A model generated the notes under the pieces. It had not been told where the DNA came from, did not search any database, and worked only from the letters and a program-made list of their open reading frames with translations. Both the position numbers and the translations under genes were made by a program. DNA of 64,000 nt from Pavona decussata (taxonomy: Eukaryota): the NCBI GenBank assembly GCA_977016875.1, contig CDRNST010000382.1, positions 1,612,001-1,676,000 on the forward strand, read 5' to 3'. This document shows, in pieces, positions 27,892 through 28,029 of the stretch (its first letter is position 1; the number at the start of each line of letters is the position of its first letter).

Positions 27892-28029
27892 GAGACTGTC
27901 GGTGCCCAATCTCAACATAGCGTGAGAGAGAGAACGTTGAGAATAAAGTACTATTCTCAGCGGTCTCACCTCTCAGGTATAAAAGGAGATGAGACAAAGT
28001 GAACAATGCCATTCTGTCGATCAAGCGAA
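27892..28029 (+). repeat. Internal B1-A2 repeat block (circle-junction copy)
   Basis: B1 matches 28169-28232 (63/64) and A2 matches 21511-21588 (77/78). They overlap at TATT 27952-27955. Confidence 0.93.
27935..27962. other. Putative recombinase core site (11-6-11 inverted repeat)
   Basis: CGTTGAGAATA-AAGTAC-TATTCTCAGCG. The arms are a 10/11 inverted match. Confidence 0.7.

Follow-up and report, generated by a model that had tools for sequence, protein, structure and literature searches.

The evidence as a whole is best explained by a 28-bp palindrome, located at an internal repeat junction of a Ngaro-type retrotransposon in the stony coral Pavona decussata, serving as the attP-like core site of this recently active element, which would integrate through it at one fixed bond into half-sites; we consider this overall account probable. 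Of the identity of the site and the geometry of the crossover, taken by themselves, we are highly confident. The analysis started from the window, a stretch of 64,000 nucleotides (assembly GCA_977016875.1, contig CDRNST010000382.1), and was extended to further copies in the same genome and to sister families in other assemblies.

The 28-mer sits precisely where repeat B1 ends and repeat A2 begins and reads CGTTGAGAATA-AAGTAC-TATTCTCAGCG. Its arms pair in inverted orientation at 10 of 11 positions, the sole mismatch being T/G, and the right arm (and with it the A repeat) opens with TATTCTCA. The arrangement of two 11-bp arms around a 6-bp spacer had been noticed by a sequence-only reading of the window, and we recovered it as described. 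Palindromes of this fixed geometry with 10/11 pairing occur four times among the ~64,000 window positions (6e-5), so that chance does not account for one falling precisely at the boundary of B and A. Furthermore, the 28-mer was unvarying in 30/30 copies. It probably preserves the circle junction in stored form and constitutes the core recombination site. The canonical poly(A) signal AATAAA spans the border of left arm and spacer (27940-27945, and again at the end of B at 28217-28222), but was rejected as the cause of arm conservation, as it is restricted to the window family and absent at that place in six sister families.

Table 1. Positions in the window of the retrotransposon, its repeats and reading frames, the junction site, and the two halves of its insertion target.
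Feature	Position	Strand	Remark
Left half of target, GAGCAG, at spacer position	21505..21510	+	in frame with 28229 onward
Whole element, Ngaro-type by layout	21511-28228		6718 bp; A1-[ORFs]-B1A2B2 layout
A1, left terminal repeat	21511..21588	+	starts with TATT; equals A2 at 77/78
TATAAAA box inside A repeat	21537-21543 (A1), 27978-27984 (A2)		~26 bases past repeat start
69-bp tandem array, internal	22010..22640	+	between leader and gag-like ORF
gag-like ORF, CCHC zinc knuckle	23090..23599	+	Pfam zf-CCHC, E 7e-5
Reverse transcriptase ORF, 731 aa	23985..26180	+	Pfam RVT_1
Tyrosine recombinase ORF, 432 aa: N-terminal zinc ribbon, ALOG DNA-binding domain, catalytic domain	26461..27759	+	Pfam
B1, internal copy of right terminal repeat	27892..27951	+	equals B2 at 59/60
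28-mer site	27935..27962		left arm 27935-27945, spacer 27946-27951, right arm 27952-27962
A2, internal copy of left terminal repeat	27952..28029	+	repeat comparison
Unique segment between A2 and B2, 139 bp	28030..28168	+	no match to left end
B2, right terminal repeat	28169..28228	+	terminates in spacer AAGTAC
Right half of target (TATTTTCATGT), half-site	28229..28239	+	7/11 match to right arm

The element that carries the site (Table 1) codes for a reverse transcriptase and a tyrosine recombinase in place of a DDE integrase, as judged from Pfam matches to RVT_1 in the former and to ALOG_dom (6e-24) and Phage_integrase (2.5e-6) in the latter. The catalytic residues R237, H351, R354, W377 and Y386 (Arg, His-x-x-Arg, Trp, Tyr) are invariant across nine relatives of the recombinase, whose ALOG part matches PDB 8p5q. 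The named proteins closest to it belong to stony corals and sea anemones, namely Porites lobata, Oculina patagonica and Actinostola. The C-terminal 331 aa of the reverse transcriptase ORF returned no Pfam match even at E 10, leaving a methyltransferase undetected in a scan that also missed RNase H and is consequently insensitive for the absence of such a domain. The lack of a methyltransferase is what sets Ngaro apart from PAT and DIRS1-like elements. Split direct repeats in the order A1-[ORFs]-B1A2B2, the internal ones lying 3′ of the recombinase gene, were present in 21/21 full copies. This layout, in which the weak scan detected no methyltransferase, corresponds to that of Ngaro, and on these sequence features the element is a Ngaro-type member of the DIRS order, an already known type; PMC4157794 and PMC8547959 ascribe such a split-repeat layout to Ngaro (Goodwin and Poulter 2004). 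Absence of a target duplication (see below) is another likeness to Ngaro. Ngaro-like elements are abundant in cnidarians (PMC4157794, PMC8547959).

Several features vary along the element or bear on its expression. The location of the TATAAAA box inside A suggests that transcription begins within A1, in which case the start of A would enter the RNA solely by way of A2. The copy number of the 69-bp array differs among copies, accounting for the spread in element length from 6212 to 6917 bp. A short ORF (21603-21859) opens with an ATG immediately past A1. The unique segment between A2 and B2 was found in contigs of 4/4 sequencing runs compared. Position 27976, a G in A2 of the window copy and a C in A1, in other copies and in the contigs examined, is a private substitution of the window copy.

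Across the genome we counted more than 110 candidate copies, and for either end a minimum of 40 copies were scored at 98–100% identity. The junction set read from these candidates comprised 21 copies with both flanks plus nine additional right flanks, i.e. 30 right junctions. Almost without exception, the repeats within a copy were equal (A1 to A2, B1 to B2), and the host flanks were distinct in every copy. As identical ends and an identical 28-mer are combined with flanks that all differ, the insertions are independent and very recent, and the family is young and recently active.

All left ends started with TATT and showed no variation over the first 11 bases of A1 (21/21), and all right ends finished with AAGTAC, the last 17 bases of B2 being the same throughout (30/30). 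Some targets do not match the element at the point of exchange. Four targets lacked C at –1 (numbered from the crossover, with negative positions to its left); each retained its own base at the left junction and C at the right junction. Likewise, at the sole target without T at +1, the host A was retained on the right side and T was found on the left. Fixed termini and non-matching targets together place the crossover always at the bond that joins the spacer's final base (C) to the right arm's initial base (T). A crossover at one edge of the spacer, as the sequence-only reading had it, can thus be specified as one at the right edge, fixed in 21/21 left and 30/30 right ends and found nowhere else. 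Permuted termini, which are expected from a mirror-image reaction at the left border that the palindrome would permit, were encountered in none of the junctions read. The number of bases shared at the junctions varied from 0 to 8 bp; one target, that of copy L034, shares none on either side. TATT was also considered as a target site duplication and rejected: the left 4-mer is invariably TATT and the right 4-mer variable, the two being unequal in 16/21 copies, with TATT present in only 5/21 paired targets.

The window copy illustrates the same geometry. Its left junction, GAGCAG/TATTCTCAGCG (21505-21521), keeps the host spacer and its right junction, AAGTAC/TATTTTCATGT (28223-28239), the element spacer; these assignments, as well as the partial likeness of the host right flank to the right arm, agree with what had been read from the window. 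A host reading frame (20005-21510) resumes at 28229 without a shift. In addition, publicly available reads of run X10 assembled into contigs in which 21481-21510 is fused straight to 28229 onward, and this form, whether allelic or paralogous, is the uninterrupted target. From the uninterrupted contigs it follows that the target was GAGCAG followed by a single TATTTTCATG, with zero duplication and zero loss.

The sequence hit by the window copy is itself part of another recombinase-bearing retroelement (20005-21510, 28229-28639 and 28865-29692), whose RT/RNase H ORF is split by the insertion and whose downstream ORF has a weak Phage_integrase match. A search for terminal repeats of this host retroelement, as a possible sister site, found none. 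Elsewhere in the window, a Myb/SANT-like ORF (40126-40932, plus strand) adjoins a DDE_Tnp_4 transposase ORF (41387-42604, minus strand), a pair that we take to be typical of PIF/Harbinger DNA transposons. On the minus strand at 45608-47633, an ORF matching RVT_1 (reverse transcriptase, E 1e-27) precedes a zf-RVT ORF, which looks like a non-LTR retrotransposon.

Alignment of the insertion sites relative to local flank background revealed the target consensus AC/TATTYTnA (the slash marking the crossover), which equals the right arm plus its two neighboring spacer bases. To the left of the crossover, A was preferred at –2 (15/21, p = 1e-4) and C at –1 (17/21, p = 2e-9). To its right, preferences were seen for T at +1 (29/30, p = 3e-14), A at +2 (18/30, p = 6e-4), T at +3 (23/30, p = 3e-7), T at +4 (21/30, p = 1e-5), a pyrimidine at +5 (28/30), T at +6 (17/30, p = 3e-3) and A at +8 (20/30, p = 3e-5). 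Positions –6 to –3 were at background, i.e. devoid of spacer homology, and the left-arm positions approximately so, with a weak excess of A at –10 (13/21, p = 0.002 uncorrected). With ~6.6 bits of information, the logo denotes low specificity, and the targets are right-arm-like half-sites, pseudo-sites abundant in the genome. The bias in target choice bears out one expectation of the sequence-only reading and qualifies another: integration without spacer homology is upheld insofar as the targets are half-sites and four spacer positions are random, but the preference for AC means that homology is reduced rather than absent. This preference had been hidden from the earlier reader because the target of the window copy has AG.

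If the 28-mer is a recombination site, its symmetry might extend to related families. Using relatives of the recombinase, we took sister loci from other assemblies, of which six families (53–72% recombinase identity) had a legible B1/A2 junction; no readable B1A2B2 was present at L051 (Porites lobata), L054/L055 and L059 (Actinostola). Locus L052 was left out as an independent case, being the same insertion as copy L041 of the window genome. Its contig (ENA ERZ25073805) shares both insertion and flanks with L041, and that ENA assembly hence stems from the same or a very close organism.

The sister spacers are all 6 bp long and end in AC (GATAAC, GTTTAC, GATTAC twice, GAATAC and TGTTAC), and A starts with TATT in 6/6 sister families. 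The window family and the six sisters have the core AATA-N4-AC-TATT in common without variation. Sister arms pair at 6–10 of 11 positions without gaps in the same place; one family reaches 12/13, and in two a single base bulges out. Depending on the family, the pair at arm position 6 is A/A, C/C, T/T or G/G, which is a compensatory pattern, and across the seven junctions (window and sisters) both-sided changes affect 8/14 arm pairs. Overall, 85.6% of cells were paired, compared to 31–53% when the partner was slid, and 0/500 shuffles reached the observed score. Arm symmetry is therefore conserved with covariation in all six sisters, yet the arms of 11 bp first proposed apply to the window copy, with its 10/11 pairing, rather than generally: the symmetric part conserved across families spans ~8 bp, and 13–14 bp in some of them. 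Among the three sister families with both flanks readable, the left flanks finish in AC, AC and GC, and several sister right flanks resemble the right arm of their own family (8/9 in L058, for example).

A mechanism that would accommodate these observations starts from circular or junction-bearing cDNA, in which the right end B, finishing in AAGTAC, would meet the left end A, starting with TATTCTCA, and so form the site, a copy of the junction being retained inside the element as B1/A2. The recombinase, through its ALOG and catalytic domains, would recognize two inverted arms of ~8 bp each, flanking an asymmetric 6-bp spacer. Integration would be a conservative crossover at one phosphodiester, between spacer C and right-arm T, into AC/TATTYTnA pseudo-sites and without duplication. 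Under the canonical polarity of tyrosine recombinases (3′-phosphotyrosine, cuts at the arm/spacer borders), which our strand assignment presumes, monomers bound to the right arm and to the target half-site would cut the bottom strands at the crossover bond, and only bottom strands would be exchanged. In tyrosine recombination, the freed 5′-OH bases swap and must pair with the partner strand (PMC4246890). Two or three swapped bases would be checked for such pairing here; being the complement of AC, they would explain why targets prefer AC and why no family departs from it. At the left border, a further exchange would be blocked, as targets have neither a left arm nor left-side spacer homology, and the Holliday junction would be finished by replication or host enzymes instead of the recombinase, as for CTXphi and VGJphi. 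The lack of shifted, heteroduplex-derived termini in 21 left and 30 right junctions fits the exchange of one strand pair, and our analysis tips somewhat in favor of the recombinase working in this manner.

The arms themselves could be read differently. Rather than as a two-arm duplex, which would then not be the substrate, the palindrome might be kept mainly as a hairpin in the sense RNA or in minus-strand cDNA, its stem providing one duplex half-site. The integrating molecule would be a single-stranded circle of minus-strand cDNA, joined to the target by a single bottom-strand exchange in the way of CTXphi ssDNA or integron attC and completed by replication. Indeed, when folded as DNA, 36-mers from the four families tested gave hairpins (z-scores from –5.6 to –7.4), and a hairpin in one strand would account for the arm covariation equally well. 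On the sense strand, G/T wobbles make up the single mismatches of the window family and of L058 and one of the three mismatches in L061, but the stems of L056 and L060 contain purine-purine mismatches and those of L053 and L057 bulges. While the targets are only half-sites, and the strand to which we assign the exchange is the minus strand and hence the first cDNA strand, a single arm with a 6-base loop corresponds to no known tyrosine-recombinase substrate, and inverted arms are the usual signature of recombinase dimer binding. DIRS-1 accumulates single-stranded cDNA intermediates, but de novo integration is still held to need a double-stranded circle (PMC7192593). On balance, we regard integration of such a hairpin-bearing circle as unlikely. 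If true, this single-strand route would parallel, in a eukaryote, the recombination of CTXphi ssDNA and integron attC, and it would explain the build-up of single-stranded cDNA in DIRS-1.

Exchange of both strand pairs appears slightly less probable still, either with a zero or very short overlap at AC/T, or across the heterologous 6-bp spacer with a heteroduplex that is always corrected to the observed products. The conservative insertion without duplication and the full two-arm site carried by the element are both in keeping with it, and the slight A enrichment at target position –10 could be the trace of a left half-site. The difficulty lies with the termini, as staggered cuts around a non-identical overlap would make them vary between insertions, and none varied. 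A 6-bp spacer heteroduplex predicts about half of left ends to start with AAGTAC and about half of right ends to carry the host spacer (observed: 0/21 and 0/30), unless a strongly biased mismatch repair masked it. An overlap of TATT or ACTATT predicts left ends other than TATT, found in 0/21 although 16/21 targets are not TATT; for a 2-bp AC overlap, non-AC right ends are expected in about half of the targets without AC (0/10). Moreover, we know of no tyrosine recombinase with a stagger of 0–2 bp. The junction pattern rules out classical two-strand exchange across a homologous spacer.

An origin independent of the recombinase, by microhomology end joining of linear cDNA or by a staggered endonuclease cut with TATT duplication, the palindrome being incidental, is very improbable: the bases shared at junctions are short and of variable length, as it would have them, but every copy has exact ends, the right flank is rarely TATT although the left end always is, the preferences at +5, +6 and +8 extend past any shared stretch, the palindrome covaries between families, and the crosswise resemblance of flanks (host left to element right end, host right to element left end) is the signature of a circle-by-target crossover, which together with the exact ends led us to reject end joining.

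We next compared the fixed-bond, half-site integration proposed here with known systems. In the model for DIRS1-like elements, a 3-bp circle junction recombines with an identical target sequence without duplication (PMC3266345, PMC7192593). Common to both are an internally stored circle junction, a short matching target and no duplication, and DIRS1-like termini, mostly NTT and often ATT, resemble the TATT of the window element (PMC3266345, PMC7192593). The window family differs in that it needs no identical target (TATT in 5/21), crosses over at the 5′ edge of TATT and not within it, and has a preference covering AC plus 8 bp. In terms of architecture, DIRS1-like elements have inverted repeats with an internal complementary region, whereas the window element has direct split repeats.

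The closest parallel in reaction style comes from bacteriophages. At dif, CTXphi and VGJphi need homology only beside the active arm, and the product is resolved without a second recombinase exchange; for VGJphi, such integration takes place on double-stranded DNA (PMC4246890, PMC3442271). The shared traits are an arm-6 bp-arm site, a central region at only one border of which exchange takes place, and homology by the active arm only (AC at –2/–1). However, the phage systems are bacterial and employ two host recombinases, XerC and XerD, at one conserved chromosomal site, as opposed to one element-encoded eukaryotic recombinase and many degenerate half-sites in the present case, and exchange of a single strand pair is demonstrated for CTXphi and VGJphi but deduced from junctions for the window element.

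The same distinction limits the label ‘dif-like’ given to the site originally. It is apt for geometry and reaction style, with ~11-bp inverted arms, a 6-bp center and exchange at a border as in XerCD/dif, but not for membership: a single element-encoded ALOG recombinase stands in place of the two paralogous host recombinases XerC and XerD, and instead of one site there are 21 paired targets with flanks that all differ. Cre/loxP resembles the window element in its use of one recombinase with core-binding and catalytic domains, and in having inverted arms whose short, asymmetric spacer determines the direction. Cre requires two full sites and spacer identity, whereas the targets of the window element are without a left arm and random at 4/6 spacer positions. 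Among eukaryotic tyrosine-recombinase elements, Crypton DNA transposons are flanked by repeats that represent 4–6 bp of microhomology between circle and target, and not a duplication (PMC13465315, PMC3212892). These short repeats are reminiscent of the bases shared between circle and target in the window family, but Cryptons are without reverse transcriptase, split direct repeats or a described palindromic core.

For recombinase-bearing retrotransposons, the accessible literature yielded no account of an extended half-site logo, of a crossover fixed at a border or of a core built as arm-spacer-arm; key subscription papers (Goodwin and Poulter 2004; Poulter and Goodwin 2005; Poulter and Butler 2015) lie outside it, and an earlier description is possible. 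The integration model for tyrosine-recombinase retrotransposons has so far been built from sequence anatomy (a circle junction plus 3-bp identity) and very little experiment; an in vitro study of any DIRS or Ngaro recombinase was not found in the literature searched. A single-protein eukaryotic recombinase with a circle site of ~30–36 bp and frequent short pseudo-sites could, we infer, be of interest to genome engineers, with a specificity of ~6.6 bits limiting its use.

For the biology of these elements, the present family offers 30 independent insertions that can be read base by base, yielding a two-arm core site, one crossover bond and a target composed of a half-site and two bases. The mechanism favored here makes testable predictions about the strand that is cut, the bases tested for pairing and a resolution step independent of the recombinase. 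In this light, what has been seen as a ‘trinucleotide’ in DIRS1-like elements may belong to a recombinase half-site, as its inner portion.
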